From positions 5,828,001 through 5,892,000 of the forward strand of contig CM074522.1 in the NCBI GenBank assembly GCA_037379345.1: a stretch of 64,000 nt of DNA. Direction: 5' to 3'. Position numbers and translations under genes: made by a program. Source of the DNA: Perna viridis (Eukaryota). Numbering within the stretch: position 1 is the first letter of the stretch; every line of letters begins with the position of its first letter. Of the stretch, positions 1-64,000 are shown piece after piece. Below the pieces are notes generated by a model that worked only from the letters and a program-made list of their open reading frames with translations, was not told the origin of the DNA and searched no databases.

Positions 1-82
1 ACTTATAAGCAAATATATATCAATATACCTGTAATTTTGATGGAATATACAGAACGTAAGATTTCACATTACTAATTTTCAG

Positions 83-1393
83 CTTCAAGATTGAGAAGAC
101 TGACCTAGAGACAGTAGCCACATTTGGTGGGGGTCTATGTAACCCTGGGTCCTATCCTGACAAAGAGAATTGTCTTGTGATGATAGATTTACTAGACCAA
201 GCTGTTCTTCCTTTACCTATCTGTTACCCGAATGGTAGTTACTCCTGGCCAGATAGTAAGTATATGCTTGTTAACCTTGTCTTATGATGATGGATTTACT
301 AGACCAAGCTGTTCTTCCTTTACCTATCTGTTACCCGAATGGTAGTTACTCCTGGCCAGATAGTAAGTATATGCTTGTTAACCTTGTCTTATGATGATAG
401 ATTTACTAGACCAAGCTGGTCTTCCTTTACCTATCTGTTACCCGAATGTTAGTTACTCCTGGTCAGATAGTAAGTATATGCTTGTTATCCTTTAAAACTT
501 CTGGTTGTAGGCCAAACTGTGACAAAATTTTTTAAAAAAGTCCCCCTTTTTTACATGAATGATTCTTTTTCGGACTCCTGACCTTCCACTCACAAATGTA
601 ATGAACCTTATTTGGCTTCAATGGCCTTTAAAGGGTACATGCTCTGGGATAAATGCACTTTGGATTCTCTCTTACTCCTAGTTGGCCCCACAACCAGCAA
701 AAAATGGCCAATTGATTTTTTGGTAACAGACCAATTTTTTTGCTAGGTATATTAGCTGGTTCATTTATATTCTATAACTTACTGTAATGACATTTCAGTA
801 TTGCCACATAGTAAGTACTGGTATATTGTTTATTCACATCAAAAATTGAAACAAGTGGTAGAGAGGGAATTTAATGAATTACAACTTCATTTTAATTATC
901 ATTTCTTTACAGTCAACTGGGCAACCTACTTCAGCAAAGAGGCAGTAATGGAACGACTAAAGAAGGCAGGCAAAGAGGCTGCTAAACAACTGGCTGGCAA
1001 TTTAGTTGAGGAAGCACTGAAAGCTCTAGGATTGCCTGAGGTATGTAGCAGCTAGTTTCTCAAAATTAAATCTCATTATTAATTTTTCCATCAAAAGTGA
1101 TATCATAACCTTGTCTTGCCAATTGTATCTGCATTATTATACTGAAGTCTTTCCATGTCATTTTATTCTACAGCTACATGTATTTCAAAATGATAAAGTC
1201 AGTATTGTTGACAAGAATTTCTCATTTCTTGATGTAATTTGATTTTTGAAGGATTTATTGGATGCAACAGGTCCTTGCCCAAGACCGGGCAATATGACAC
1301 TTGCCCTGCTTAAAGGAAAGCTTGAAGATGCCAGTTTATCTGTAATTGGAACAAGGACAGAACTGAATTCCAGATGGGAACTTTATGATAGGA
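83..1393 (+). CDS. Partial repeat 0: module C plus split module D containing a SAP-like motif
   Basis: Exons 83-255 (FKIEKTD...[15 protein letters not shown]), 913-1040 (INWATYFS...LGLPE) and 1252-1393 ([24 protein letters not shown]...WELYDR). Confidence 0.85.
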
Positions 1394-4300
1394 GTAAGTA
1401 TATTTCTAAGTATAAGATTTGATGTAATACATGATGAAAACATTTCGTTGGAAAAGAATTTAGACATATAATGTTGCTTGGTAATCTTTTTACTGTATGA
1501 TCCTAAATAAAAGTTTTAGTATGACAGGGGTTTATCGAGAAAGGTTACACTCTATATTTGTGACTTATAAGGTTGTCAAGCTCAATCATGTACAATGAAT
1601 AGAGTTCCCTATCTTATGATTTTGGCACAAGGTTCACGACTTTTTTGGCCATCTTACACTATTATGATTGTTGTCAAATTTCTAATGATTTGGCAAATTC
1701 TCTAAAAATTTTCTGATTTCCAGATTTTTTTTTCAGTTCTGTTCAGTTCTTTTTTTATATGACTCCGTAACGATTGCATCAATGGTCATTTCTGGTTTGA
1801 AAAAAAAACATGGTTGTAAAGAAAATAGTGATGCTTCTGCCAAGAAAAAAGCTGACCCAGTGGTCACAAAAGTTTAAGGAAGGCTATACATCCTCAATAT
1901 GGATGTTTTATGTTCAATATAATCAGCTTTTTGTGACAAAAAATAACATTACAATTTTTTATCTCAAATTACTATTCTTTTGGGTGTACCTTACTATTGT
2001 CTTTAGAGAGGGGTAGGCAAGTCTGAGTGTCTTAAGACTTTCCAAGGGAGAGCAAAATCCTGGTCACATAAGGCAGATGGTCTTTCTATGCAGGTGATGT
2101 GTTATTTTATAAAATCTGTTGAAAAGACCCAAGTGTATTGAATATACCATGTCTCTTCTAGGTTGTTATTTAGCTCTTTTAAACAAGACCTTGACACTAC
2201 CAGCGATAACCAATCCCACGATGAAAAAACACCTTTATTATTCCCTGACACCAAACTGTATGAGACTGGATGCCTGTGCAGATATTACTATCAAAGCTAT
2301 TGATTACACCAAGGCATTGAGGGCTTATGTTGAACTGGATCCCTGCCATTTTATCTTGTATGCTGGATTTGAGAAGTGGGAGAGACAATTTATACTCATA
2401 TCATATGAGTGGGGTAAGCATTTAGTGATCAGCTGTTTTTACATGGTAGCTGAATTCAGTTTTTTTCCTTTAAATTGAAAAACAATTTTTGAGTCTTATT
2501 TGAGAAAGTTGAATAATTGGATACCTGCAATAAATACAAAGGTAAGGAATGACTTACATGTACATGTATTAACAGTAGTTGTTTTTGCTTTAAAACTTTG
2601 TTAGAATTTAATTTACAATTTAAGATTGTAGTAGACATACTTCATATTTCGTATCTGTTCAGCAATTTATTTTTACAACTTTGCCAATTTTTTTGCAGGT
2701 AAAGAAGAAGTTTTAGAAATCACTCCAGACATAGTTGTCAAGTAAGTATTGTAGGGAGGAAGCGGTATGATAGAAGTGGATTATTGCCCTTTTTATAATT
2801 CACAAAAATCAAACCGAATAAAGAATGGTAATTCTTGCAATGTGCCAATTTCACACACAATCTATATATTTAAAAACTAAGACTGGTTATCTGATCAGTA
2901 AGTGTTTCTGTACAAGAAATAAAAGCGAGTTCCATCAGTTTTGGGTGAATTACCTTCTGACTGATACTTAAAAGGATATTTAATAGTAAATATAAAGGAA
3001 AGGTGACAAAAAAATTGTAGAAAAAATGTGAAAGGATGGATATAGATAAAAAAAACCAGTTTTGTAATGTACATTTTAATCTTTTAGGTTTAAGGTACAG
3101 CGAGATGCAGATGTGAAGAAAGTTTTTATTGTTGATTTTGGACTGAAGATTTGTATCTCAGGAGAATGTATCCTAGATGAGTATGTCATTACAGACTATG
3201 AAGTACCAATTCCACTGTGTAATGAGGATTTCACCCTGCCAGGTTAGAATTTAGTGCTGTAGAGAGATGGTAATACATTGTGTTGAAAGGACTTGTAATT
3301 ACCTGAATCTACTTGTTAGCTGGACTAAAGTTATCCAATGGATAAGTTTAGTTCTATTTATAAAAGTTTTCCAGCAGATAAATACTTATCTTCCAGCTGG
3401 GTTCATTTGTTCAAAACTGTTTATCCACTGGTTAAGTTAGAGATTGTACTGTTCTTTATCCAGTGGATATATCTTATGAAAAAACTGGGCTCAGCTGCTC
3501 AAGCTTTTAACAATTAATATCAGATTCTTGAATATGAAATTAATGGTATGAATTGAACTGAGTTTGATGTACTTTAATTTACTTTTGTACTTGAAACCTT
3601 TTGTGAATGTGACTCTATGGAAAATGGAAAACCAAGAACAACTTGAATACCTTGAAAACCAATAAATCTGAACTAACATATCAATACACTGGCTGCTATG
3701 ATTGAAGTACATGTATTTGATTTAGGTTCAGGTACTATTAAAGACTTTGCTGCCCAACTGGGAGGTGCCATTACTGCTGAGGCCTTTGATTTGATCCTTC
3801 GGACACTCAAACTTGATGTAAGTAATTACACATACATTTCAGGTAGTCATATTTTGGTGTGGCCTATGCACTGCATGTACGGCTTGTTTTATTGACATTT
3901 TCTCAAAGTGGGGTTGCCCCCAGAACTAGACAATCTATAGGTATTGGTAAAGCAAACAATGATAATGATATTGAAACATTTTTAAACTATTTTCAATTTT
4001 ATGTTGTATGTTGTGTGTATGTGTTTTTTCTTTGTCTGGTCTTTGTCCCTGGGTTACATTCTTTTGTTTTCTGCTAGAATCTTGGTTCCCTTGATTACTC
4101 TTTTTTCTTTCCTTGCAGACTGTGTTCATGAAAGGCCCAATTACAATTCCACCAGGACCAACAGGTAAAACATTAAAACTTGAAAACTATTAGTTTCTAA
4201 AATGGTAGATGTTGGGAAGAAATTTAACATGTAATTAACATTCCCATTGTAATGGGTATATAGAAGTTTGTTCCTGTAAAGTCCAATGATACAGACAAAA

Positions 4301-7300
4301 TAAAGAAAATAAAGATAAAAGCAAGACAGAAAACGAAGCAGCTGAAAGCAAACTGAATTTGATGAGTACTCATCAAGAGTATGCAATACTTCCGTAGCTG
4401 GTGAATGTTAGAGTAGTCCCTACAGTATCAATTACAGTTACAAAAGATACAATGACACTGACTCCACTGACAGGCTAAGAACGTTTTGATACAGACTTAA
4501 AGGGAAAGGCTACCTTTGCATTAAGTTTGGCTCTTATGATAAATCATACCCAGGTGAACAAAAATAAACAACCTTAAATACAAAATGCGCTTTTATAAAA
4601 TGCTCAAGGCTATGCAAAGTTCGAAATATATGTAAATAGCCATCGTACAGAGCTCTCCTTTCTGAAGGAAGATCATAAGCAGACTTTATTGATTTTAACT
4701 GAAAGTTTTCGATTGGCTCGTGATGTCATTAAGTCAGTTTGGTACTGATACAAGTACTGTAAATAATATGTAAACATAGAATATTCCGTAAATATTTCTC
4801 CGATCCTGTTTATCTAATCACCAAAACATGTTGTCTTGTCAAAATTACGATTGCAGGAATGATAAAAGAGAATATTCTAAAAGTTGTTGATCGGCAACAC
4901 AAACATTCTTTGGAAGTAGATTTTCCTATGACATACTAATCTTCTGGCAGTAAATCCCGGTTTTCGTCGACGTTGTCTGACATTCACTTAATGTTGTGCC
5001 TCAATCTTTTCTTCTATTAATTTTGGGTTGAAATTATAGAGGAAAAATCCCAGATTTGAGATTTTTTGGACGTCGTTATCAATTACCTATTTACTTTCAC
5101 TTTACAAACCGACTTTGTGACATCACAGCTCAACCAATCATGGTGGCGCCCATGGACGCAGGAAATTCAAATTGCCTAATTTTAAATCGTGATTAATTAA
5201 TTAAAAAAGGGAAATAATTTTGTTTCAATTTAATTTTCATGAACACTCAAAAGACTAGTTTCGATATTTATGACTTGCACAATAACATGGTCTTCTCCTT
5301 TAATGTTCATCACTGCCATCAGTAAGCGTCTTCTAGCTCAATGCAAGTTTTAGTTTTCTTTCCATCATAAAAAGTAGTCTGGTTTTAATGGTCCGTCTTT
5401 TTTTGACACTTACATATTTTTGCTGATATTTAATATACATTGTTTTTGAATCCATTTTAGACTGCCCATGGCAGATTGATGTAAAGAAGTACCTCCCTGC
5501 TTCAGTAAAACACATGGTGAACTGTGAAATGCCACAGAATTGTTTTGGATTGGACTGTGCCATTGATTTGTCCTTCAACCTTCCAGCTGCCCTTGGAGGC
5601 AGAACGATACAGTACAACATCCCATTCTGGTTCAAAATGAGTCCATGTGACTTTGAAATCGATGTTGGATTTGGAACTTTTACTTACAAGAAGACTCTGT
5701 TTGAATATGTTTGGGGTAAGAAATTTTTTTCCCCCTGTAATTCTGAAGATAACTGTTATTATTACAGTTTTCATCTTAAATTCATACTATCAATTATGTT
5801 CTACTTATTTGGTTCAGGACTTTTTATCAATTGAGATTTCTATCATTATCATTTTTGAAAATTGGATAGGGGAAAAAATAGCTTCAATTTAAACAAGGCG
5901 GCTGTAATTAAAAAGTGATTGAAAGTAAAATATGGACAGGGATCCAGTATAGCCTCGTTTATGAATAACAAATGAGGGTAGTAAGATTAAAAGGGGGATC
6001 ACTTTTATTCCAGGTGAAGAGCGTACACTTAACATTGGAGATGCTGATCCAGAAGCACCTGTACAAATCAAGTTAGTGTCATTAGTGTAGACATGTATAT
6101 ATCTATACATGTACTTTACCTTATAATTTTTGTGAATTTTGGCTGTAACCTTTTAACACTATCAAAGTTAAGGTTAAAATGGTGTGATCCAAATAAATTG
6201 AAGCTGTTCAGTGTCAACACCTAGGTGTTTTTTTATAAATGAAAAATTTAGAAATTTTGTTGATTTATTCACCATTGTTGAAGATTAATTGCAGATGTAA
6301 TACAATATCATGTTCAACTTATCAATAGAAATTCGGTAATCAGTAAGATACATGGTAACGGCCTGATTAAATGTCTGCCTTTTTAAATCTGAATTTTACT
6401 GTTATCATTTATTTAACTGTAGACTTCTGATTTTCATTGTTTTTTCTAAAATCATGTCAAAGTGATGCATAATAAAATTTCACAATTTAAAACTTAGATA
6501 CACCATTGATAAGATGGGAGGTGGACAGGGTTTCATTGTTGATTGTACTGTAAGGATTTGTTTCCCATTTGATGGCGATCCATTCTGTGTACCCATAGAG
6601 GAAGGTCTTCATTTACTAAACCAACAGGAAATACCACTTTGTTCTAGGAACATCACGCAACTGTTCAATAAAAGTAAGGAAGCTACAAATTGTTCTTGTT
6701 TGTATGGAGAAGGTTGAATTATTTTATATTTTAGAATAGAAATGGAACTTCTGGTAAAACCTGTCCATTAAACCAGATACCTTTATAAATTCCTGTCTAT
6801 TTAATCAGTATCAATAAATTTGAAACCTGCATACACCAAACACTTGCATAAACTGAACATGACCTTACTGTCTCATACAGTTTTTGTAGGTTTCACTGTA
6901 TATACTATGAAAATTAATATTGATTAGTATGCTTTGATATACATGTTATTTATGGGGTTTTTAGCCGTTAAGTTTGTTAGGACATTGTAACCCAATTTGA
7001 ATTTTATTTTACAAACTGTGAAAGAACTTTAATTTGTAGATCCCAATTTTTGTGGGTTAAGGAAGTCTTGAATTTGTGGTTTTAAGGTTTTCAGTTAACA
7101 CATCAATGATAATCTCTGTTTCGTTAGGAACCTAATTTTGTGGTTTGGCTCAACCATGAAAACCACAAAAATTAGTACTCCACAAACAATAGTACTTTCA
7201 CAGTATTTATCTTAGAAAAGCTTTAGAAGAGAACAGAACATTTTTTGGGGAGTAAAATGGTTTGCCAAAATTATACTGTGTATAATATAACTTCTCTGAA

Positions 7301-10300
7301 TTCTACTTTTATGACACTTGTTAACATTAAAAAATTTCTACTTGCATTTCAGATTTCTCAGTGACTGATATGATGAAGGATGTAGGATATGAGGCTGGGA
7401 AACAGCTGGCTAAGGGTGCTGTTCAGTACGTACTCGAACAATTTGGTTTGACAGACTTCTTTGCTGGACCCAAGTGCGACAGAAAACGTGGAATTTACAA
7501 TCCAAATATACTGGGATGGAATAATCGTTAGTAGATATTGGTCTACCTCATTGATCATGTTCATTATTGACAAACAATGAGATTTTTTACAAATTGAAAT
7601 ACAAGAACTTTCATTACTCATTGACACAGTACATACAATGGTATAATAGTATACATGCTAAATGCTGATTTTTTTATTTTTTTTTAAAGATTTGTCTAAT
7701 TTTGAATATATATGTTGAATTTCTCTTATCTTTATAGAATTAAATACATTTACATGTATAGCATTCAAATAGGGAGACTTTGAAATACATGTAATTTTGA
7801 TGTTGAGTAATATGAGGCATACTTGTAATTTTGCATCTTTGACTACATATATTTCTATTGCAGAGTGTCCAATGAGTATACTGAAGTTACCAGACATTGA
7901 CGGCCCTATGACCTGCATGATAACAGATACTTGCAGTGGTATAGATTGTTGTGGAGAAATACCATTCCTTGACCTGACAATCCATGCCTACTTCATCATA
8001 AACACTTGTGAATATAGTATTTCTTTCGGTATTAACTCCAAGGGCATGAACCTGTCCCTGTTTGAGGGAGGAATTGACAGTTATGAATGGGGTAAGTTCT
8101 TTTTTTCTTCGGATATCTATCGATGCAAAAAGATTTATTTTAAACAATGAATTGCACCATTGTTAAAAAGTAAATTTCAAATGCACAATTTTTAATTCAT
8201 GTTGTATTCAAGGGGACAAAAAGAACAAATATTGCAACTGAAGAATAAACATTTTTTTATTATTTTGAACAAGTATCTCAATTCTTTACTAATCAGCTTA
8301 ATTGCTTTTATTGTAGGAAAACCTTGGATAGTCAACATTGAAGATGTTGTGAAACTAGAGTGAGTACAAAATGACATTACAATTTTGTTTGTACTATTGT
8401 TATAGTTAGTATTCCATTGAAATAGACTTGGGGATGATTGGCGTGACTTCAATTTTATATGCCCCTTTCTCCATTCATTTATCTTTCCACATACCTACAA
8501 TATTTAAAAAAGAGAGAGAGATTTTAAAACTGTTTTCATATTGTTTGTATCATTATTACTCAACATTTATGTAGTATACATTCCATTATTAGGTTTATTT
8601 TGAAGAAACCTGCTGGACAGAAAAAGTTCATTTTAGACTTCAGTGCTCATGTTTGCTTTAATCCTGATGATGTTGACCAATGCTTGGAGTTTCCCATCAT
8701 GAAAGGAACTGAGATACCACAGCTACTCTGTGACATGACTGCAACTATGAGCTTGTCAAGTAAGTATATTGTAAACTGTGGAAAGTTTTGACATCATTTT
8801 TTTTGTTTGTTATTTTCTTCATAAGAACTGCAATTTAAAAATTAGGCTGTAACTGAAATCACAGTCAAAGAAGCCTTTCACATGATTGAAATATGATCCC
8901 TTATTTTCCAAAATCACAAAATAGATTGACTGGAAAACACATGAAATAAAAGACAGCATGACAATTACTCAAATGCAATGGTTACAAATGGTAGTCTGAT
9001 GACAATGATATCTTTTTACACATTTATAACATAAGATATGTTTTGCTAAAAGTTTGGAAAATTTATGCAATCTTTTTTAAAGAGGTATGGTTCTGAAAAA
9101 TACATATAACCAAATCAAAACTTAACTGTGAGTGTTTATACTAACTACTATTTCATCATAATATGAGAATTGTTTATTTTAGATTTCTCTGCCATTGATT
9201 GGGGAAAACAATTGGGAATAAACATTACAGATTTCAAAGGGACATTGGCTAAGAATGTAGCTCAGCTCTTAATACAACAGTTAGGTATAGATGAGTATAT
9301 GGAAGATCCTGGATGTTCCCGCAATGATGACAAGTATCAACCTAGTGTTGGCGGCTGGAAAAATAGTATGTATATTTGTAGATAATGTATGGTGGATTAA
9401 TTTGGGGGGGATGAAAAATTTGGCAATTTTAAGGCAAAAAAGAATTTTAAAAGAAATTTGTCAAATTTGGTATTGGCAGATACTTAGTGCTGCAGTAAGC
9501 ACTTTAGTTCAGAGTAAATACATTAACAGAATTTATTTTGGCGTTTTTATAGACTTCTAAAATATGCCAAATATATTGGACACATTGTCATATTCTTACT
9601 ACCATTCATCCCTTATTTTTTTCACCAAGTATATTCTCAGATATGCAGATTAAACACAGTTTCAGATTGAAATATAAAATTTCTAGTTATATATCTTGTT
9701 TAGGATATTCCTGTAAGTTGACAGCTAGCTGTCATTACCCTGTTTTTGACTTCTGGTTTAGCTTATTGAGGAATCAGATTGGAATTTCAAAAGTGGTTCT
9801 CTTATTGCATCCGGATTGTAACTGAAAAGTTTATTGTGCACTGCACTGATGCAGTGGTTGATCATTGACCACACCCAGCACCCTATTTTAATAATTGTTG
9901 ATGGGGTCTCTGTCTCTTGATTATTTACCAAAATTTGTGTTTGGTGTTGGTGAAGTTTTCACTATTTTTTGGCAAATTTCAATGAATAATCCTGAATCAG
10001 TTAATGAGATTGATATCTACCATTAAATGAATTTGCTTTGTTAACTATTATTTTATGTGGCGTAGATATATATTTATAAAACAAAAGCAATGTTTTTTTT
10101 ATTTTACAGTGTGTCCTTTGGATTTTGTGACACCACCAAACATGACATACCCAATTAACTGTTACATACCTGATTATTGTTTTGGTATTGACTGTTGTTT
10201 TCATTATGATTATCTGGATATCTCGTTAAGGACATACCTGTATGTTGACACCTGTAATTATGTCATTAGTGGTGGTATTGAGAAGTTGACTTTTGAATAT

Positions 10301-55300: not shown

Positions 55301-58300
55301 AAATTTTACTTCAATTTTACATTTTTTGTCCCCCAAGATGCGTCGTGAAGGGACATGGAAATGGCAGGTGTCCGTCCAAGTTTTCTGCACTTTTTTTGTA
55401 ATGCTCCTATCAAATAAGTTTGTTTTTGGTATATAGCCTTATTATGAAGAGTTACAGACTGAGTTGAACTTTGGTTACGGTTGAATGATTTTTACTTAAG
55501 TTATGGCCCTTGGACTTAGAAAATTTTAGTAAATTATCCACTTTTTTTAGGCATACCCTATGTTTATGTACATTAAAGATGGCAATTTTTTTGGTATCTC
55601 TAGCAGTAAAATCGGATACTATAACATATCTTGACAAAGCACAGTTCTACATTTAGTATTTTATCCTTTTCCAGTTACATGATAACAAACCTACCGATCG
55701 ATGGCTCATTCCTCATCACTGCCTCCCTGAGTGTTTGCCTTGAAGCCAATGCTGACTGTGCTGTCGTCAGAACTGTTGCCAATAACATGAAGATAGACAA
55801 ACCAGTCTGCTCATCTACAGGAGAGTTTGCCATCCCAGGATTCTCTCTTACATCATGGAAGAACCTTAAAGGTCTGATGCCTTCAGATCCGTTACCAGAC
55901 TTTGGTAAATCGCTGTTGATGAATGACCTAAAAATAGCCAAGTATATGGAGGATCCACAATGTACTATATCCTCCTCTGGATGGCAAGCTGGTGGTAAGG
56001 ATTAGATATAACGTGCTGGGTTAGAATATGGGGCATATATCAAAAGACGTTGGTCATGATATACTTATATTTTAAGCTTCACTGAATTCATAGTTAGCAT
56101 ATTTATTTTACATACTGTGTTCTCATACAAGTCATCATATTTTTGAAAGTCGCAGTACTCAAGGATTCATTCAGAAATTGTGATAAAACGCCAGCATCTG
56201 TATTTGAAGTAGGTTTGTTACACAGAAATCATTTTACATTTCAGAAAGATTACGCTAATAAAACTTATCATATCCCTACTTCCTTGTATTTTCTAGGTTG
56301 CCCTCTAAGCATTGAACTTTCTGATCTCCATGACAACATGACATGCCAGATCACAGACAGTTGTACTGGTGTCAAGTGTTGTGTGTATACCAAAGAACTG
56401 GACCGTAATTTTGACATCAATGTCATTCTTGACCCATGTGACCAGAGTTTGTCACTGAGTATTGATCATCTTGTCAATAATGTCAGCCTGTATGATCTAG
56501 GATTTGGTGAGTATTGTACAAAAATAACAACAAAAAGACATTTCATCATTCACAGGCAAAATATACTAGTACGATTCTCATTATTTTCACATGACTTTTG
56601 TTTGAATCAAGCATTTGAATTTTGTGACAGACTTTTTGTGAAATTTATGTGAATCAAGGCTTTACATGAACTTCACATGAAGATTTCACTTAAGAATCAT
56701 GTGAAGTGAATTTCATGTGAACAATATTTGCCTGTGACTTTGATCCATTAATGTTTGTATATGCTAAAGAAATAGAAATATATAACCTGATTCCAATAAA
56801 GTACAATTATTATACAGACACTTTATCTACAAAAATGCTGACACTTTGAATGTGATATGTTACCTCTAGTTTATAATAATTTCTATGTTCAAAGTTCAAA
56901 TATTAAAATCATTATGTTTAAGAAAAGTTTAAAATTTGAAATATGCAGTTCATTTGTGTAAAAAGAACCCAAACTTTACTTTATTTCTTCAAACTATATC
57001 CCAGGTACCCTGAACAAGTTCTACATGGAGAATGTTGTCAGAGTGGAGTAAGTCCGTTTACATTTCTTACAATATTTTTTTACCCAGGGGTAGATATTTC
57101 ATAGGGGTTAAAAAATAATATGACATCAGAGAAAATATGTAGCAAAGTATAAGAAAAGCACAAACAAAATATAGAAACCAAAACAAAAAAAAAGCAGACT
57201 TACAGAAGTCTCAGAGTACAGAAAAAGATAAGCAAACCAGACCATGTAAATGCTGTGAGCATTATCTGCTTTTCTCCAAACACCAACTCGATTATGGCTG
57301 CCATAGGATGTAAAGCCATAAGCAATCAATCAACCAAATGCTGAGTTGTTAATAGAAGAAAACTAATGGAATTCTGTGAGAATCTGTTTATTCATGGTTA
57401 TGAATTTCCAGGATTTGTTTTTAAAAAAATCATAAGTTTTAGGTTGTTTGATTTCATTAATTTTAATACTAAGAGTAACAAAGATTTCAATAAAAACTTT
57501 ACATTTTGTTGGGGAAAAAAATTGTTGTTTGACCGAACTATGAAAAATAAAAAGTAGTATTACCCCACAAACATTTAATAGTTCTTAAACAGTATTTCTG
57601 ATTTTCACGATTAACTTTTGCCTTCCATTTTAATCCACATTTTCTTATGACATCAATCGTTCTATACACACATGTAATTTTCTCTCCCACAGTTATGTAG
57701 TGTATGATCTGATCAGTGACTTTAAATACTTGGTTGATGTGAATATTAGTGTCTGTTACGAGTCTGCTGCACCCTGTGAGCTTGAGACTATGGTCTTCCA
57801 TAGTACCGTTTTACACAAAAAACCGTGTGAATGGAAAACAGGCTTCAGAGATCCAGGTATTTATTTCCTATTTAACCGTGTCCCACCCTTCACCAAACAA
57901 AGATTGAGAAAATTCAATGTTTTTTTCTTTTTTTTTTTTTCTTTTGTTTTTTGGGGCCATTTCACCCAAATGGAACTTGATGAACTTGTGAAGTTTTGCG
58001 TAATTTTTTGGGGGTGAGGATGAAGCAGTACAAATATAGCTTGATTATGGAATTAACCTTTTTGTTGTAGGTTTCTCTCAAGCAACCTGGAGGACATCAA
58101 TGAACATATCATCCAATGCCCAGCTGTTCCCTGTTGACATTGCCCAGCTGAAGGAGGCTCTCTTTGTTGGCCCATTCGAGCTGGATACTGCCTGTCAACC
58201 TTACAACGCTCCATATTCTGGGGCCATAAGTGGATGGAAAGATGGTTTGTATTATGAATATTTTGGTTAGTTTGGGACTGAGTCATTTTTGTTTTTGATA

Positions 58301-61300
58301 GTTCCACTAAGCTTGACAGAGTTAAAATGCTTGATCTATTTAAGTGGCAGTCTTTGTAAGAATCATGCAAAATCTGAAAAATGTGATACACCCCAAAAAA
58401 GGCTACATATTTTTATTTTTGTAATTCAGTTGTTTTATGGGTCTATACTATGAAATGTGTAATTATTTATTCAAATCTGCCTGCGCTTAGGAGATAATCG
58501 CACTGAAAATCCAGTAGATTCTATTGTATTTGAGTGCGATTTACAGAGTTATCTCCCTTAATTTTGAGATCTACAGTGCATTCTATATAATTTTTATCTC
58601 CTAAGAGCATGGGTTATATGAAAATCCACATGTTAATTTCTGTTTACTATGACATTTCAAACAGAATATCAAAAATAAAAATATGTAGGCTTTTTACCCA
58701 TGAATCACATTTTGCATGATCCTTAGCTGGAGTGCTACTTAAAATGTAAATAATAGCAGAAAAAAATGTATATTAGGTTTCTTTAAAAAAGTTATTGGCT
58801 GGAAATAGTTCATTTAAAATTATAACATAACTGTATCATGTTGTTTAGTAAGAAAAGAGTGGTTGGAAAAACAAGCTTTATCCGGCATGGAAATCTATGA
58901 TAGATCCAACATACAAGAAAACGAACAATTCTCATCTGTTTCATTAAATGAACAAAGTAGATTTCACTTTTTATGACAATCTGCTTGTATAATACATGTA
59001 GGAAGGTTAGGGGTCAATTGTGTTTTGAAATTAAGTACCTTTTTTTGACTGTCAGTTAAGTTTCATTATCCTATGCAGTAAATGTATTCATTTTTGCAGT
59101 GGACAGAAAAATGCAAATAGTGGTCCCCCACAAAATTTATTATTAACACTATAACAATTTTTTTAAAATGCAAAATATTGGTACCTGCAAATATGTTCAC
59201 TTGACAGAATTCACGAAAAATTACTACGTTTACAGTGCCTTTATAGCCAACCATAAGGGAATGTCAGTTCCATATAGAGCATATGTTTATTCACTTCCAG
59301 TCCAAACCTAAGCTAAAATTAGATATAGATATTTTACTTTAACCACTGAAAATTTTATTTATGCAGATTGTTCAGTATCATCGGACCTTGAGTCGTTACC
59401 AAGCACTCTGATGAGGTGTTATATCTCCTCTGACTGTAAATCTGTACAGTGTTGTCATGAGGTAAATCTACTTGCTACTCCTATGGAGACAGAGCTGACC
59501 ATGGATCCATGTAACTTTGAACTGAAAGTCAGAATAGAAAAACTGGAATTCAAAGTACCATTCTATGAATTTGACTGGGGTGAGTTGAGTTGTTCTAAGA
59601 CTGTAATTGAATATAAATGAAACCTTTGTGATCCATGTTTAGAACTATAATCTGAAACTGAAGAAAAATGACATAGGAACCACTTTTGATAACTGAAATA
59701 AGATGTTTTATTGCTGTCAAGTACTTAATGGTTCTTTATTTTAAAGGTATTTGACAAAAAATGTTTTTCAAGTAAATTGCACTGGTTGTAATTACAGAAA
59801 AAAAAGGAATTTGGTTCTTTTCTTTGGAGTGCAATCACCATGTTAACAAACATGGTCTTTTTGAAACTTAATCATATACATTTATATTCTGAATATATGG
59901 ATGCAAGCTTGTTAACTTAAGTGATACTTTACAATTGATTCTGTTTATAGGTGTTAAGAAGAGCATTGATTTGTTTGGAATACTTCAAATGGAGTAAGTA
60001 GAAGTTACAGGTTAAGTATAGTTTGTGCAGTGTTGCCTCCTACCCTTACCCTTGTCCATAAAATAAGCTTTTTGCTACAAAAAATGCACCTTGCTTTTTT
60101 TTTTTTTTACAGTTTGTACCCTTTGGTCTTCCCTACCTTGTTTTGTACAGTTTGTACCCTTTGGTCTTCCCTACTTTGTTTTTTTTCAGTTTGTACTCTT
60201 TGGTTTTCCCTACCTTGTTTTGTACAGTTTGTACCCTTTGGTTTTCCCTACCTTGTTTTGTACAGTTTGTACCCTTTTGGTTTTCCCTACCTTGTTTTGT
60301 GCAGTTTGTACCCTTTGGTTTTCCCTACCTTGTTTTGTACAGTTTGTACCCTTTGGTCTTCCCTCCTTTGTTTTGTCCCTTCTTAGTACCTTCTGTATTG
60401 CTCCCTCATTTCTTCTGACTTTTGTGACTGGTATTTAGACAGAACCATTCTTAAAAGTATGAACATCCCAAAATTAAAAAAAAATGTTCTCTTCTTCACA
60501 GTTTCTAATCCAATTGTTTTATTGAAGTCTTTGATACTTATGCAAATACTTTTTCTGTGGTTTTTAGCAGATGAACCTAGGATATCAAATTTACACATGT
60601 TTTACCTTTCCATCATATTTTTTTTTGTTTCCAATGGTATCTCACAAATGACATTAACAAATAATGACTTGATAATTAATTTCAGCTTCATTGCCGAGAA
60701 CCTGTATCTATCTAAAGAATTCCTGGTTTCCATGAATTTGACGTTGAGCTATGAAGCAGCAGGACCAGTCCATTCTAAAACGGTTGTCATGGATAAGGTT
60801 CTGTTACCAAAGAAATCATGTGATTGGAGTTCTGACTTCCATGTTACAAGTGAGTTAAATAAATACATAAAAAAGTTTTTTTCAGTCAGCATGGTTAAGA
60901 AGCAATATATAAAGTGAGTTATTGGTTCTTGAAATTGTGGTTATATTTATTAAATTTAGGGATTATTGTATGTATTTATTATCAAATTTGTCCTTCTAGT
61001 CCATATTGTGACTAATTTTGTTGGTTCAGTACTTGTTAAAATTCCATATTGTTAGCTTTATTTTTGCAATTATATATATTTCCCTCTTGCACATTTGGAA
61101 AAAATAAAAGAGTTGTGTTAGTTATTCAAGCCCTTCCATTTCTGACCCACATATTTACAATGATTTGACCATTGCTAATCCTAATATCCATGGACTTTAT
61201 TTTTGTGTATCTTAAACATTTGTTTATTCAAAGGTTTCTCATACAACACCTGGGCCATACAGAGGAGCCACTCTCCTAGTGTAGCTCTGACTGAGCCCCT

Positions 61301-64000
61301 CCTGCTACAGTTTATGGAAGACACCAATCTGGCACCATTTATGAAGGATGTTATGTGTAATCAGACAGGTAGTCCATACAATGGTGAATCTTGGACACAA
61401 GGTATGACTTGCTTGACTTATTTCACTTTGTCCCATGGGGACATAGGGTGACCACAGCTTCTCTGCACTTCTTCCTGTCTTTTGCCAACATCTTTACTTC
61501 TCCTCAGAGGTCTCCCCAATCCTCAGAACTCAGATGTTTTCCAGGTGTTTTTTTGGTCGCCCCCTCTTTCTGTGGACATAAGGTATGGCAGTGATTAAAT
61601 TTCTCAGAAGAGTGCATGTAGTTTACTTTAAAATTTGCCACAATTTTTTTTTCAACTAATTGCTTACTTGAGGCCTATCTCCTTTAATGGTTAAAAAAAG
61701 AAAATTGCTCAGAAAATTAAGATCTAGTTTGATTGTTTACATATTTCTGCTTTATGCTCTTGACATGTATTCAAAACTAGTACATTTTTAGCTTACCTGG
61801 CCTGAAGGCTTTACTGCCCTTGAAAGTAAAATGAAATAGTCATTCTTTGCATATTTTTTCTTACATTTTAAGAACCACAGCTGATAGGGAAAAGGTTTCA
61901 ATTACTGGAATATTCTTTTATTCCTGCATAATCACTACTACACTAACTCTAAGAAAGATATTCTATTTTTCCATTTCAGATTGTGCTGCAAACATCAGCT
62001 TACCCTCCCTGGACAGCAAAGTGAACTGCCACATTACTAACATGTGTTCTGGGGTGCAGTGTTGTATTCAGAATGATATCATGCAGCGTACTCTGGAGTT
62101 CTCCCTTGAACTGGATCCCTGTGAGAAGGCTCTCAGTATCAGTATAGAAAACACTCGCTACAACAGGACTTTGGATAGTACCTTTGTATATGGTAAGTTC
62201 TTTGTTGTTTTTATACATTTCTGTTTCTCTTTTTTTTTTTGGTCAAGTTTAATTGTGAATTGTAATATGTGCTGTTTTTTTTTTTGGAAATTTTAAAACT
62301 TTGTGCAATATATTTCAATATCCTCTTTGCTTATGGGAAGTAAAACTTATTTTTCAGGTGATGACCACTACTACAACTTACAGGGAATTGTTCGTATCAG
62401 GTAAGGTATTTTGTAATTTTGTATTTTTGAAATTGATGATTTTCAAATATTTTTGCAAGTATTTTGAGCTCATGTTAAGCAGAAAGTTACCTTATTGTTA
62501 GAACTATTAAAATGTGCATATTAGCAGGTACTTATTTTCATCAATAATAAGTGGGAAATTTGTGAAAATAAAAACACTGCGAAAACAATTTAATTGAAAT
62601 TAGCCCTATCAATTGTTCCATTCAGTCACTGCATGTCACAATGTGACTGTATGGAACAATTAATAACTCTAATTTTATTTAGATTGACCGCAAAAAAAAT
62701 TTATTACATCATGTACTTGTATTAAAGATGGAAGTTTCATCTGTTTTGATTTTACATAGTACTGTACACTGATTTTTTTTATGCTAAGTATAGTTATACT
62801 TTTGTTCTTGTTTTGCAAACCCCAGTCTTCAGTGATATGTATTTATGTTTGCTCTTAGTTTCTGCTACCAGGAAACATGTATATCAGCGAAGTTGAAATT
62901 AGAACAAACTCATGAAATAGAAATATACCATTACCTTTAAAATGATCATAGTACTTAAAATAATTGTTTTGGTTTTTTTTAGGTACAACATAGACAACCT
63001 GTATTATGACAGATTCTACCTTGTTAATGTTGTTGCCTTGTTCTGCTACGAGTCAACTGGAGTACAGTGTGCACCAGACAATACATTTACTATCCTGGAG
63101 AATGCCATGTTTCCCAAGAAAATCTGTGGATGGAATGAAGGCTACAGGATCACTAGTATGTTAAAATGAACAAGAATTTTTCTATAAGGGCAATGAGTAA
63201 TACCAGGCAGTAGCAGGTCCAGATGTGGGCAGGGGTTTAGGGCACAGGTTTAAAGAAGATTGACACACCCCTTTTTGTTGGAAAATTTTGGTAATTTTGT
63301 GCAAAATCAGGGCAAAAATTAGCAGGTAATGGCTAGGAACCCCATTCCAAGTCTTTGATCTAAACCTGCAAAATCATATTTTATGAGTCACTCATCCTTT
63401 TTTAAACCAAAAACATAAAAATAAGAACATTTTGATACAGATATGTCATTTTCATTTTTCAGATTTCTCAAGGTCAGCTTGGTATACAGACAATGGACTA
63501 CAACAAGGAGCTGTCCTGCCTGACTGGGCAGCTTCCTCCTTCCTCAATGACCTTCACCTTGCTGCTTACCTGCAGACCACACAATGTGGGCAGACATCAC
63601 TTATCTATAACAGTGGATGGAATATAGGTGAGAATTTATGAATTATGAAGAAATGAAAATAGATTTTTTCCTCAAAAAGAATTTTTCAAAGGATATATTT
63701 ATATATATGGAAACCTCATGGTGCAATCAGTATTCACAGAGAGTGGAAAAAAATACATTTTAACCATTTAAGGAAATTCAGATTTTGTTTAAGCTAAAAC
63801 AGGGTACTTTGTCATTCTTAATTCATCTAAGTCCATGACAATTTCTTTTTACCAGCATGCATTAAATCAGTTGATTTACCTGACATTCCATCACCAACCA
63901 AGTGCCATCTGACAGCAGGATGCACTGCAGTGGAATGTTGTACGGAGATTGACTTCCTGTCACGCTCATTCAAGACCTACTTCCATATTGACCCATGCAC
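83..64000 (+). CDS. Internal part of a giant multi-exon gene (97 exons in window, ~16.7 kb CDS, ~5,580 aa) encoding a probably extracellular protein of tandem ~200-aa, 10-Cys repeats; open at both ends
   Basis: All exons are bounded by AG/GT. Exon lengths mod 3 fit a constant phase scheme (A and D = 0, B = 1, C = 2, fused exons additive), and I found no in-frame stop. Recurring motifs: CxxxxxCxxxxCC...DPC...GIE, then LPKxxCxW, then FSL...C...GW. There are many NxS/T sequons. Confidence 0.92.
170..490 (+). repeat. 107-bp tandem triplication covering the 3' end of the first exon and its donor site
   Basis: Near-identical units start at 170, 277 and 384. Each contains CAGATA|GTAAGT. Confidence 0.92.
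2162..4164 (+). CDS. Repeat 1 (divergent; module D split and lacks its Cys)
   Basis: Exons A 2162-2413, B 2699-2741, C 3088-3242, D 3726-3817 plus 4119-4164 ([15 protein letters not shown]). Confidence 0.82.
3990..4105 (+). repeat. Diverged copy of short interspersed repeat family X
   Basis: TGTCTGGTCTTTGTCCCTGGGTTACATTCTTTTG...CTTGGTTCCCTTGATTACTCTTT matches the copies at 38272, 44835, 49578 and 53057. The left boundary is approximate. Confidence 0.75.
4497..5303. mobile_element. Non-autonomous TTAA-targeting DNA transposon (Kolobok-like), ~800 bp
   Basis: TTAA-AGGGAAAGGC at the left end and GTCTTCTCCT-TTAA at the right end give an imperfect TIR with AGG termini. The interior is richer in CpG than the flanking intron. 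Confidence 0.6.
5461..7526 (+). CDS. Repeat 2
   Basis: Exons A 5461-5715, B 6014-6071 (58 nt), C 6498-6673, D 7353-7526. Confidence 0.88.
7015..7204. mobile_element. Short MITE-like element
   Basis: Inverted termini ACTGTGAAAGAACT ... AGTACTTTCACAGT. Confidence 0.5.
7864..9365 (+). CDS. Repeat 3
   Basis: Exons A 7864-8091, B 8317-8359, C 8593-8759, D 9183-9365. Confidence 0.9.
10110..11970 (+). CDS. Repeat 4
   Basis: Exons A 10110-10328, B 10871-10913, C 11059-11234, D 11797-11970. Confidence 0.9.
12347..14212 (+). CDS. Repeat 5
   Basis: Exons A 12347-12562, B 12897-12939, C 13316-13473, D 14045-14212. Confidence 0.9.
14563..16127 (+). CDS. Repeat 6 (A+B fused)
   Basis: Exons AB 14563-14827, C 15071-15234, D 15954-16127. 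Confidence 0.9.
16910..17043. mobile_element. Foldback (palindromic) MITE
   Basis: The left arm CAGGTGTCAATTTCACAAAAAGTCGTA...GATCGTAAGTAATGATGTCACAA is inverted in TTGTGACGTCATAACTAACGATC...TACAACTTTCTGTGAAATGTACACCTG. Confidence 0.7.
17185..18742 (+). CDS. Repeat 7 (C+D fused)
   Basis: Exons A 17185-17400, B 18080-18122, CD 18402-18742. Confidence 0.9.
19060..19320 (+). repeat. Tandem triplication (~92-97 bp) of a splice acceptor plus exon start
   Basis: Three copies of a pyrimidine tract followed by CAG|AATGCC(C/A)ACACCCCATTGG, with AG at 19080-81, 19177-78 and 19269-70. Confidence 0.88.
19271..21597 (+). CDS. Repeat 8
   Basis: Exons A 19271-19495, B 19913-19955, C 20434-20594 (lacks its Cys pair), D 21424-21597. 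Confidence 0.88.
21800..23408 (+). CDS. Repeat 9
   Basis: Exons A 21800-22012, B 22416-22458, C 22758-22921, D 23238-23408. Confidence 0.9.
23656..25267 (+). CDS. Repeat 10
   Basis: Exons A 23656-23865, B 24267-24309, C 24449-24612, D 25094-25267. Confidence 0.9.
24916..25087 (+). repeat. ~85-bp intronic tandem duplication just upstream of the acceptor at 25093
   Basis: CATTCATTGTTAGCAGATTTGGTTGCTGTCAGATAT...GGGGGTTTCTAGCATGACAAATTAT.TAACTTCATGTT occurs twice. Confidence 0.88.
25613..27993 (+). CDS. Repeat 11 (A+B fused)
   Basis: Exons AB 25613-25865, C 27127-27305, D 27811-27993. Confidence 0.9.
26070..27000. mobile_element. Probable unclassified transposon-derived insertion
   Basis: This B-C intron is unusually long (1.26 kb) and CpG-rich. 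I found no clear TIR or TSD, so the boundaries are approximate. Confidence 0.3.
28226..29517 (+). CDS. Repeat 12 (A+B fused)
   Basis: Exons AB 28226-28481, C 28900-29063, D 29341-29517. Confidence 0.9.
29151..29236 (+). mobile_element. 3' end remnant of an RTE-clade LINE
   Basis: Translates [26 protein letters not shown], resembling the RTE ORF C-terminus (AQNRxxWxxxVxAL). Confidence 0.55.
29831..29945. mobile_element. Tiny TTAA-flanked MITE (~115 bp)
   Basis: Inverted termini TTAA-AGACAATAACAGTGCCAC ... GTGGCACTGAGAGTGTTGTCT-TTAA. Confidence 0.6.
30150..31954 (+). CDS. Repeat 13 (A+B fused)
   Basis: Exons AB 30150-30402, C 30758-30921 (weak AAG acceptor), D 31775-31954. Confidence 0.88.
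31250..31298 (+). repeat. Compound microsatellite poly-C / poly-A / (GA)n
   Basis: Read directly from the sequence. Confidence 0.9.
32444..35448 (+). CDS. Repeats 14 and 15 (A+B fused; D14+A15+B15 in one exon)
   Basis: Exons AB 32444-32696, C 33168-33331, DAB 33673-34111, C 34397-34560, D 35281-35448. Confidence 0.9.
34611..35016 (+). mobile_element. TTAA-flanked MITE, ~400 bp (family Y, copy 1)
   Basis: Termini TTAA-GTAGC ... GCTAC-TTAA with subterminal inverted AGAATCATGCAAAAT. It is the reverse-complement homologue of 58340-58742. Confidence 0.85.
35886..37557 (+). CDS. Repeat 16 (A+B fused)
   Basis: Exons AB 35886-36141, C 36841-37004, D 37381-37557. Confidence 0.9.
37963..40538 (+). 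CDS. Repeat 17 (A+B fused)
   Basis: Exons AB 37963-38215, C 39050-39213, D 40365-40538. Confidence 0.9.
38272..38478 (+). repeat. Short interspersed repeat family X
   Basis: AAGCAGAGGACGCTTACCC...GGTGCACCTGGTCCATG...TGTCCCTGGATTACATTCTTTTGATTAC...TACTCTTTC. Confidence 0.85.
40727..42020 (-). mobile_element. Internally deleted Mutator-like (MULE) DNA transposon, 1294 bp
   Basis: ~32-bp TIRs with GGT termini, including a 26-bp perfect core ATCCTGGTTTGCATACATTTAATTAC (40733-40758 and 41989-42014). 8-bp TSD AACTGCCT at 40719-40726 and 42021-42028. A transposase remnant lies inside. Confidence 0.9.
41201..41665 (-). pseudogene. C-terminal fragment of a MULE-type transposase with one internal stop
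   Basis: Reads [18 protein letters not shown]...YVTEHWVE...[39 protein letters not shown]...[12 protein letters not shown]. The RTxNxxEGWH / HPNI motif is typical of MULE transposases. The TGA stop is at 41429-41431. Confidence 0.85.
42223..43300 (+). CDS. Repeat 18 (A+B fused and C+D fused)
   Basis: Exons AB 42223-42478, CD 42954-43300. Confidence 0.9.
42657..42769 (+). repeat. Degenerate 26-27 bp minisatellite (~4 copies)
   Basis: Units approximate ATCAAGGTTAACCAAGGTCAANTGTN. Confidence 0.8.
43566..45673 (+). CDS. Repeat 19 (A+B fused)
   Basis: Exons AB 43566-43821, C 44183-44346, D 45503-45673. Confidence 0.9.
44622..44778. mobile_element. Near-perfect foldback MITE (~75-bp arms)
   Basis: TAAGAATTGGCTATGA...TTATTGCAC, loop ttcgcttc, GTGCAATGA...TCATAGCCTATTCTTA. 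Both ends are TA. Confidence 0.85.
44835..45085 (-). repeat. Short interspersed repeat family X (longest copy)
   Basis: Reverse complement of the 38272 copy. The distal boundary is approximate. Confidence 0.82.
46024..47571 (+). CDS. Repeat 20
   Basis: Exons A 46024-46239, B 46532-46574, C 46939-47102, D 47407-47571. Confidence 0.9.
48238..50029 (+). CDS. Repeat 21 (A+B fused)
   Basis: Exons AB 48238-48493, C 48752-48921, D 49856-50029. Confidence 0.9.
49578..49754 (-). repeat. Short interspersed repeat family X
   Basis: GAGTAATCAAGGGAAC...CTGGGAGCATGGACCAGGTGCAC. Confidence 0.85.
50173..50336 (+). repeat. 24-bp minisatellite, ~7 copies
   Basis: Head-to-tail units of TGACATTGTATCAAATAGTTTCTG, one with a 2-bp deletion. 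Confidence 0.92.
50579..51965 (+). CDS. Repeat 22 (B+C fused)
   Basis: Exons A 50579-50788, BC 51243-51449 (43+164 nt), D 51804-51965. Confidence 0.88.
52263..54219 (+). CDS. Repeat 23
   Basis: Exons A 52263-52475, B 52698-52740, C 53367-53533, D 54049-54219. Confidence 0.9.
53057..53273 (-). repeat. Short interspersed repeat family X
   Basis: GAAAGAGTAATCAAGGGAACCAAGG...GGGTAAGCGTCCTCTGCTTTTCTAGAA. Confidence 0.85.
54677..55994 (+). CDS. Repeat 24 (C+D fused)
   Basis: Exons A 54677-54892, B 55249-55291, CD 55675-55994. Confidence 0.9.
55322..55545 (+). mobile_element. Degenerate Helentron-associated (HINE/DINE-1-like) fragment
   Basis: A T-run is followed by a short stem (TGTCCCC...GGGACA) and a GTCCGTCC micro-repeat. 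Similar layouts occur at ~20606 and ~46725. The family assignment is from recalled architecture. Confidence 0.4.
56297..58244 (+). CDS. Repeat 25
   Basis: Exons A 56297-56506, B 57005-57047, C 57693-57856, D 58071-58244. Confidence 0.9.
56551..56736. mobile_element. MITE-like element with CACAGGCAAA termini
   Basis: CACAGGCAAAATAT ... ATATTTGCCTGTG, with internal TTCACATGA/TCATGTGAA repeats. Confidence 0.55.
58340..58742 (-). mobile_element. TTAA-flanked MITE, ~400 bp (family Y, copy 2, inverted)
   Basis: TTAA-GTGGCAG...AGAATCATGCAAAAT ... ATTTTGCATGATCCTTAGCTGGAGTGCTAC-TTAA. It is colinear with the reverse complement of 34611-35016. Confidence 0.85.
59367..61401 (+). CDS. Repeat 26
   Basis: Exons A 59367-59579, B 59951-59993, C 60686-60849 (lacks its Cys pair), D 61234-61401. 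Confidence 0.9.
60108..60377 (+). repeat. 38-bp pyrimidine-rich minisatellite, ~7 copies
   Basis: Head-to-tail units of TACAGTTTGTACCCTTTGGTYTTCCCTACCTTGTTTTG. Confidence 0.92.
61406..61575 (-). mobile_element. 3' end remnant of an RTE-clade LINE
   Basis: The minus strand gives KRGRPKNTW... and ...[20 protein letters not shown], followed by a short TAAGTCAAGCAAGT tail. Confidence 0.6.
61980..63627 (+). CDS. Repeat 27
   Basis: Exons A 61980-62192, B 62358-62400, C 62983-63155, D 63463-63627. Confidence 0.9.
63856..64000 (+). CDS. Repeat 28 module A, cut off by the window edge
   Basis: After ttttaccAG the frame reads [48 protein letters not shown]. Confidence 0.88.

Follow-up and report, generated by a model that had tools for sequence, protein, structure and literature searches.

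The 64,000-nucleotide window analysed here (G000:C12:5828001-5892000, Perna viridis; AT-rich, with 32-34% G+C) contains 27 whole units (2-28) and parts of units 1 and 29 of a 34-unit array, which encodes tandem modules of ~200 residues and 10 cysteines. The combined exon, homology, and modelling data favor a joint reading, at a probability of approximately 0.6, in which: the window covers the middle of a single gene of ~165 kb and ~12,000 encoded residues; the product is a giant type I membrane glycoprotein; its modules are autonomous; and the array acts as a rod or platform that furin releases. The module is rated as a new extracellular domain family, and the protein as an unusual branch of the large lipid transfer proteins that is anchored in the membrane.

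The array is built from a four-exon cassette

Self-comparison of the stop-free stretches of the window by BLAST identifies one large family of 75 segments on the + strand, with only scattered matches on the - strand. Hidden Markov models (HMMs) of the three long exon types reveal a strict D-A-C periodicity at 7355-63998 (+ strand). The unit is a cassette of four exons, D, A, B, and C, in which exon phases are conserved (D 1-1, A 1-1, B 1-2, C 2-1) and the B exon is 43 nt long wherever it is separate. The junctions are: D to A in phase 1, where exonic G precedes the GT of the donor and the acceptor AG is followed by 2 nt and TGY; A to B in phase 1, with the donor after the encoded 'WG'; B to C in phase 2; and C to D in phase 1, where exonic CCAG precedes GT and the acceptor AG is followed by 2 nt and TTC.

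From unit 4 to unit 29, 86 exons (7353-64000, +) all carry AG/GT sites and compatible phases and total 5,073 residues, with zero stops when split codons are included. Before them, at 72-6672, come the final exon of unit 1 and units 2 and 3, which are diverged; this region is collinear with Lottia and Haliotis proteins. The preliminary description of this DNA had proposed 97 exons in one frame of ~5,580 residues; the 86 exons and their 5,073 residues stand as checked, and units 1-3 bring the total close to both figures. Its count of at least 27 tandem copies of a ~200-residue, 10-cysteine domain is borne out, as is the observation that the copies have diverged and are nevertheless stop-free. 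Neither a start nor a stop of the protein lies within the window and the frame runs on past both ends, in agreement with the larger protein that had been anticipated.

Introns have been lost from several cassettes, such that A and B are fused in ten units, D, A, and B in one, C and D in three, and B and C in one. As unit 16 carries D, A, and B in a single exon (33673-34111), these three exon types read in one frame. The consensus of 112 units from database homologues has 196 match columns, including 10 cysteine columns conserved at 80% or above, and contains the motifs FSL..W, LGI..YL...C, CTG..CC, LDPC, GIEK, DY.WG, and LPK..C.W, which reproduce the motifs of the preliminary description. The ~2.2-kb cassette escapes Tandem Repeats Finder, its copies having diverged too far in DNA sequence. 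The homologue profile used below was built from the A(+B) exon alignment (A2); a mixed alignment of D, A, C, and fused exons stacked different exon types and was dropped. Searches and fold predictions used the fused exons of the window and database homologues rather than the joined spliced model.

Flanking exons and the extent of the gene

The flanks were examined for 50 kb upstream and 90 kb downstream, and kb positions are given relative to the window. The 34 A-type exons extend from -1.0 kb to +75.4 kb. By tblastn, Potamilus P0004 (residues 23-1551) and amphioxus P0155 align collinearly with the upstream exons at 30-85% identity, and Sinanodonta P0151 (residues 3447-6862) and amphioxus P0010 do so with the downstream exons between 78 and 127.5 kb. 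The preliminary description had suggested looking in these flanks for a signal peptide and terminal domains, and a putative signal peptide and terminal domains are found. A signal-peptide-like Met and hydrophobic stretch, read by eye at ~-37.9 kb, lies directly before the head and aligns with the N-termini of the Haliotis, Patella, Potamilus, and Asterias proteins. The head itself corresponds to Vitellogenin_N (PF01347), which scores 34 bits in P0004 and 44.3 bits in P0155 against a Pfam cut-off of 24 and is precomputed on full-length relatives.

Next in order is an M23-peptidase-like region; among the homologues, one Peptidase_M23 match is above the Pfam cut-off and others fall just below. 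An upstream exon (L006:7645-7803) then matches SAP (PF02037) at 35.7 bits versus a cut-off of 23.9. The SAP-like copy within the window (1243-1419) reaches only 14.5 bits, below the same cut-off, and in homologues SAP sits inside an early unit, after the D cysteine and ahead of the first cysteine of A. Derivation of the D exon from SAP is rejected: SAP is an insert after the D cysteine in early units.

Downstream of the array, Pfam identifies a PAN domain at ~87.7 kb. The exon at 127836-128222 reads as an EGF-like stretch followed by a hydrophobic helix of 22 residues and then RWKRRE, and it matches the C-termini of the Haliotis, Lottia, and Patiria proteins. An EGF-like stretch, transmembrane helix, and tail at the C-terminus indicate that the protein is made as a type I membrane protein. 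The preliminary description had proposed a secreted or matrix protein of repeated modules; the repeated modules and the one very long frame stand, and the C-terminus adds that the product is made as a type I membrane protein whose array could be freed by furin.

R-x-K/R-R sites occur after the head (~-20.7 kb), after unit 34 (RRRRRR, ~76.6 kb), at ~81.8 kb (RKKR), and at ~121.4 kb. A pair of such furin-type sites is conserved in gastropods, directly after the last unit and ~375 residues later, and these conserved sites could free the array. Between RRRRRR and RKKR, directly after the last unit, lies a cysteine-free module (~76.3-81.8 kb; L008), and the same ~375-residue spacing of the sites is seen in the Haliotis and Lottia proteins. 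The exon at 80542-80790 of this module shares 72% identity with Sinanodonta and 54% with amphioxus.

Beta-rich repeats with the recurring motif W..F.DPESGI..Y follow the PAN domain at ~86-122 kb (L009-L010, L018-L019). Pfam gives no match on single exons of these repeats, and public relatives of the region have precomputed fn3, Big_9, and cadherin-like matches. In the head intron, a ~6-kb minisatellite (L005, ~-19.6 to -13.4 kb) contains a 19-residue periodic open frame (HYIPQHTIGSSWDPEREGL...) with open stretches of up to 303 residues; it is probably non-coding.

Exon phases and the gene models of other species point to a single mRNA. One candidate for direct evidence, P0053, was taken for a transcriptome contig and turned out to be a genome gene model, and therefore supplies no RNA evidence. 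If the window instead represented several adjacent genes or a decaying array, this would accord with the many public models of the family that are fragments of 100-2,000 residues. However, the 86 consecutive exons run without a stop, a start-type exon, or a phase break; the RefSeq models from Haliotis, Asterias, Patiria, and Acanthaster unite head, array, and tail in 7,360-7,606 residues; and A exons are open in all four paralogous arrays of this genome, described below. A split into several genes is unlikely, and the chance of it appears very small.

Predicted structure of the module

AlphaFold2 models a single unit (P0044, the orthologue of unit 6) with a predicted local distance difference test score (pLDDT) of 92.8 and a predicted template modelling score (pTM) of 0.87, and three units (P0019) with a pLDDT of 89.6 and a pTM of 0.80. 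The same helix and strand pattern recurs in each unit. In the predicted layout, D contributes two helices, loops rich in cysteine come next, and A, B, and C together contribute eight to nine strands; the 43-nt B exon encodes one strand and the start of the next. This is consistent with the earlier proposal of helices in D and beta structure in A-C. That a whole D-A-B-C unit is modelled confidently on its own supports the domain boundary, and the high pTM of the three-unit model suggests fixed packing between units.

Pfam assigns no family to 10 exons or to 32 homologues (E up to 1), a PDB sequence search returns 0 chains at E up to 10, and Foldseek against the PDB, with one unit and with three, gives only beta-rich matches of low template modelling (TM) score and no clear fold. 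The best fold match is the N-terminal domain of FAIM (PDB 3mx7), an eight-strand closed beta sandwich. Foldseek against the viral structures of BFVD returns nothing, and the 'virus' label of one ESM Atlas cluster is thus probably a binning error. The cysteine pattern had been judged to fit none of EGF, VWC, TSP1, LDLa, SRCR, CUB, sushi, TIL, or C-type lectin, and an undescribed fold had been proposed. The Pfam result, which covers exons and multi-unit homologues, and the PDB searches agree with both statements, and no full-length match to a characterized domain family was found in either database. The repeat defines a domain family of ~200 residues and 10 cysteines that has a confident predicted structure and matches neither Pfam nor a solved chain.

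One family, DUF4773 (PF15998), had been named in advance for HMM comparison. This uncharacterized cysteine-rich family of arthropods and molluscs is like the repeat in its secreted type, its size, and a C...C..CC stretch. It differs in that the Pfam model (cut-off 27 bits) misses the repeat on the same 10 exons and, at E up to 1, on the 32 homologues. Comparison at the profile level is likewise negative: hhalign of the 112 units against a thin DUF4773 set of five sequences gives a probability of 0.2%, and the unit profile against the full-length DUF4773 protein P0158 gives -1.2 bits by hmmsearch and 0.3% by hhalign. In the ESM Atlas, a DUF4773 cluster is present among the feature matches (0.84) and the structure matches, the latter with TM scores of 0.41 and 0.43 over 115 residues, below 0.5. 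On sequence, DUF4773 identity of the repeat is rejected. PF15998 matches in this genome are on contigs C13, C4, C7, and C9, with none at the giant-gene locus. True DUF4773 exons above the Pfam cut-off, at C13:2.77 Mb and C4:9.59 Mb (L012-L014, L016), are unrelated in sequence to the repeat. Word-index searches yielded next to no matches, whether the query was P0044 or a DUF4773 exon.

Relation to large lipid transfer proteins and to modular giants

The giant protein is like the large lipid transfer proteins (vitellogenin, apolipophorin II/I, and apolipoprotein B) in having a signal peptide and Vitellogenin_N head and in its very large size. Its R-x-K/R-R site soon after the head is placed as in the apolipophorin II/I precursor. 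It differs by the addition of M23-like and SAP domains, 12-34 cysteine modules, PAN, long beta-repeat regions, and an EGF and transmembrane end, and to our knowledge no large lipid transfer protein has these features.

This head raises the possibility that the modules carry lipid, with the amphipathic sheets of 34 modules holding or shuttling it together with Vitellogenin_N, such that disulfide-stapled modules take the role of the apolipoprotein B beta-belt. In the sequences and the consensus, strands do alternate hydrophobic and polar residues; an ordinary beta sandwich would show this equally, and the best fold match, FAIM, is a closed sandwich. The ten conserved cysteines and the confident single-unit model argue for compact, self-contained domains, and the apoB100 structure is absent from the fold matches. 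Furthermore, DUF1943, DUF1081, and VWD, which form the lipid cavity of vitellogenin and apolipophorin, are not found by Pfam on P0004, P0022, P0155, P0152, or P0023, or in the precomputed lists of array-bearing full-length relatives. A lipid-carrying array is accordingly rather improbable. Slightly more doubtful still is a broader version, in which these proteins would form a class, so far undescribed, of giant marine-invertebrate proteins that resemble lipoproteins and are tethered to the membrane, with the 12-34 disulfide-stapled modules as a lipid-holding or surface-coating scaffold behind the Vitellogenin_N head. If true, this class would offer a modular equivalent to the apolipoprotein B belt, built on a fold unseen in solved structures.

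Abalone VERL, which has 22 ZP-N repeats, SCO-spondin, and hyalin are giant extracellular proteins of tandem cysteine-rich modules on symmetric-phase cassettes. The array described here is like them in its tandem modules of 150-200 residues, duplicable exon cassettes, and copy number that varies between lineages. In contrast to those proteins, its module is none of ZP-N, TSP1, LDLa, EGF, SRCR, CUB, sushi, VWC, or TIL by Pfam on the exons and the 32 homologues.

Distribution of the family

Among 1.84 billion proteins, the A(+B) exon profile matches 759 at E up to 0.001. Named matches come from the bivalves Mytilus, Mya, Potamilus, and Sinanodonta, the limpet Patella, the nemertean Lineus, the flatworm Macrostomum, and amphioxus, and all of these are annotated as 'uncharacterized' or 'hypothetical'; the nemertean and flatworm occurrences are shorter or partial models. 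A search with the C-terminal part of P0151 recovers full-length proteins from Haliotis, Patella, Lottia, Gigantopelta, sea stars, a brittle star, and amphioxus. It also picks up more remote proteins from a hemichordate, a crinoid, and cnidarians. The architecture spans the protostome-deuterostome split, from molluscs to echinoderms and amphioxus.

With a local unit HMM, 12 units are counted in gastropods, sea stars, the brittle star, and amphioxus, and 13 in Gigantopelta; partial bivalve models have 13-21. In full-length gastropod and echinoderm proteins (7,338-7,954 residues), the array starts near residue 1,200-1,400, and full-length relatives including amphioxus span about 6,500-7,950 residues. 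A sister group of ~5,000 residues, to which the hemichordate relative belongs, has a single A-like copy, and the same HMM finds no unit in the cnidarian relatives. The protein is not an orphan: it is a mussel-specific expansion, to 34 units, of an array with 12-13 units in gastropods, in the sea stars and brittle star, and in amphioxus.

Four arrays are present in this genome, with at least 109 open A exons together. In addition to the giant gene of the window (C12:5.83 Mb, +), they are located at C12:23.92-24.03 Mb (+; ~33 A-type exon copies, open), C12:28.95-29.06 Mb (-; ~33, open), and C4:8.87-8.94 Mb (+; ~19, open). These three further arrays are paralogous giant genes.

The family is not described in the literature that was searched by domain combination, accession, and locus name, including the adhesion-proteome papers PMC9382459 and PMC7333891. 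Several automatically assigned public names look wrong on the proteins P0030, P0198, P0202, and P0213, which are called TDRD9 helicase, FAT1, JAG1, and CRB-like. One scanned homologue with DEAD-helicase Pfam matches appears to be a chimeric gene model, and by its name this is most plausibly P0030. A domain model would help to correct such fragmentary or misnamed public gene models ('FAT1', 'JAG1', 'CRB-like', 'TDRD9').

Growth of the array in the mussel lineage

Mytilus proteins match individual units of the window in order, at 55-86% identity, where the next-best unit reaches 25-40%. These one-to-one matches indicate that the units are old and that each has been kept individually. In best hits and in a tree of A segments, units 1-5 of this array (w1-w5) group with gastropod units u1-u5 (support 98-100). 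In the tree, w1 also groups with sea-star u1 and w34 with u12, while w6-w33 mix with u6-u11 without resolution; the order of the internal units is unreadable because the tree has only 71 columns. The simplest reading of these groupings is that cassette duplication multiplied six internal units, as in gastropods, to 28 in the mussel lineage, with the end units fixed. The all-symmetric phases of the cassette allowed duplication of whole units. Read this way, growth from 12 to 34 units, with fixed ends and a multiplied interior, would be a clear example of cassette duplication raising the copy number.

Such an expansion could alternatively reflect ligand recognition, with each diverged unit directed at a different immune, gamete, or substrate target. 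Consistent with this, units within the array are 25-40% identical to one another and yet each is kept across genera; there are four paralogous arrays with their combined A exons; and the neighboring M23-like and PAN domains belong to types that elsewhere bind peptidoglycan or carbohydrate. Against it, orthologous units remain 55-86% identical between mussel genera, with no sign of fast diversifying change, and a structural ruler accounts better than a repertoire does for unit numbers that stay at 12-13 from gastropods through sea stars and the brittle star to amphioxus. Recognition by the array is an unlikely explanation.

Proposed organization of the giant protein

The favored reading, of a membrane protein with a releasable rod or platform, can be set out as a sequence of parts and steps. 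The polypeptide would contain, in order: a signal peptide; the Vitellogenin_N head; the M23-peptidase-like and SAP domains; 34 modules; the cysteine-free module between furin-type sites; PAN/apple; the beta-rich repeats; EGF; a transmembrane helix; and a short tail. It would enter the secretory pathway as a type I membrane glycoprotein. Each D-A-B-C module is predicted to fold independently: two helices form a cap that, together with loops rich in cysteine, packs against a beta part of eight antiparallel strands, and five disulfides presumably lock the module. Adjacent modules are predicted to hold a fixed mutual relation. The array may form a stiff, protease-resistant extracellular rod and a multivalent binding platform. 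Furin probably cuts before and after the array, which would yield a separate subunit that includes the M23-like and SAP parts.

Several points weigh against this proposal. The alignments behind the AlphaFold2 models are shallow (32-36 rows), and the models were read out as pLDDT, pTM, and DSSP, so that the disulfide pairs and rod shape are presumed. The Vitellogenin_N match is to orthologues; in this genome, the individual exons fall short of a scorable length. The furin-type sites are sequence predictions, and cleavage at them is presumed. The case for one transcript draws on phases and the models of other species. Finally, the role given to the array is inferred.

Units of the array

All units are on the + strand. 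The C-type exon of unit 1 (72-263, bounds approximate; its A exon is ~1 kb upstream of the window) matches Lottia P0172 1399-1459, Haliotis P0165 1448-1508, and Sinanodonta P0152 579-643 by tblastn. A 107-bp unit in three tandem copies of 96% identity (170-492) triplicates the 3' end and donor of this exon. Unit 2 is diverged (912-3244) and includes D helices at 912-1040, a SAP-like insert at 1249-1395, A at ~2176-2413, and C at 3088-3242. It is placed by collinearity with P0172 1457-1697 and P0165 1506-1744 and by the A and C HMMs (E 7e-7 and 2e-4), and it groups with gastropod unit 2 in the A-segment tree (98/86). Unit 3, also diverged (3716-6672; D ~3716-3817, A 5461-5715, C ~6498-6672 with an uncertain donor), is collinear with P0172 1697-1897, matches the A HMM at E 2e-5, and groups with gastropod unit 3 (100/100). 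The B exon was not identified in unit 2 or in unit 3.

Units 4-29 rest on the AG/GT sites, phases, and open frame of every listed exon. Unit 4 (7353-8759) consists of D 7353-7526, A 7864-8091, B 8317-8359, and C 8593-8759 and groups with gastropod unit 4; unit 5 (9183-11234), of D 9183-9365, A 10110-10328, B 10871-10913, and C 11074-11234, groups with gastropod unit 5. The D, A, and C exons of unit 6 (11797-13473; D 11797-11970, A 12347-12562, B 12897-12939, C 13316-13473) share 75-86% identity with P0044, a single-unit protein of Mytilus galloprovincialis, of which the B part (a 13-residue exon) is unmatched. Unit 7 (14045-15234) has D 14045-14212, a fused A+B exon 14563-14827, and C 15071-15234. 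Units 8 and 9 share the C+D exon 18402-18742, its first half being C of unit 8 (15954-18567; D 15954-16127, A 17185-17400, B 18080-18122) and its second half D of unit 9 (18562-20594; A 19271-19495, B 19913-19955, C 20434-20594). A 97-bp tandem repeat of 2.5 copies (19079-19319) duplicates the A acceptor and first codons of unit 9; the acceptor is placed at 19271. Separate exons continue in unit 10 (21424-22921; D 21424-21597, A 21800-22012, B 22416-22458, C 22758-22921) and unit 11 (23238-24612; D 23238-23408, A 23656-23865, B 24267-24309, C 24449-24612).

A and B are fused in unit 12 (25094-27305; D 25094-25267, A+B 25613-25865, C 27127-27305), unit 13 (27811-29063; D 27811-27993, A+B 28226-28481, C 28900-29063), unit 14 (29341-30921; D 29341-29517, A+B 30150-30402, C 30758-30921), and unit 15 (31775-33331; D 31775-31954, A+B 32444-32696, C 33168-33331). 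Unit 16 (33673-34560) follows its single D+A+B exon with C 34397-34560. The A+B fusion recurs in unit 17 (35281-37004; D 35281-35448, A+B 35886-36141, C 36841-37004), unit 18 (37381-39213; D 37381-37557, A+B 37963-38215, C 39050-39213), and units 19 and 20, which share the C+D exon 42954-43300: its first half is C of unit 19 (40365-43131; D 40365-40538, A+B 42223-42478) and its second half D of unit 20 (43129-44346; A+B 43566-43821, C 44183-44346).

Unit 21 (45503-47102) has D 45503-45673, A 46024-46239, B 46532-46574, and C 46939-47102, and unit 22 (47407-48921) has D 47407-47571, A+B 48238-48493, and C 48752-48921. The B-C intron is lost in unit 23 (49856-51449; D 49856-50029, A 50579-50788, fused B+C 51243-51449), and unit 24 (51804-53533) has D 51804-51965, A 52263-52475, B 52698-52740, and C 53367-53533. 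Residues 778-1748 of Mytilus edulis P0007 run collinearly with units 19-24, at 55-78% identity.

The third C+D exon, 55675-55994, supplies in its first half C of unit 25 (54049-55843; D 54049-54219, A 54677-54892, B 55249-55291) and in its second half D of unit 26 (55841-57856; A 56297-56506, B 57005-57047, C 57693-57856). Identity to the two-unit protein P0025 is 65-76% from C of unit 25 through the A exon of unit 27 (58071-60849; D 58071-58265, A 59367-59579, B 59951-59993, C 60686-60849). Unit 28 (61234-63155; D 61234-61401, A 61980-62192, B 62358-62400, C 62983-63155) is followed by unit 29 (63463-64000; D 63463-63627, A from 63856), which is cut by the window end, and by five further units to ~75.4 kb.

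Dispersed repeats lie in introns at window positions 497-743, 3847-4165, 38119-38547, 44752-44934, 49576-49674, and 53059-53157. The first of these (497-743) has at least 40 copies in the genome at 71-79% identity, and the others recur in several introns of the giant gene.

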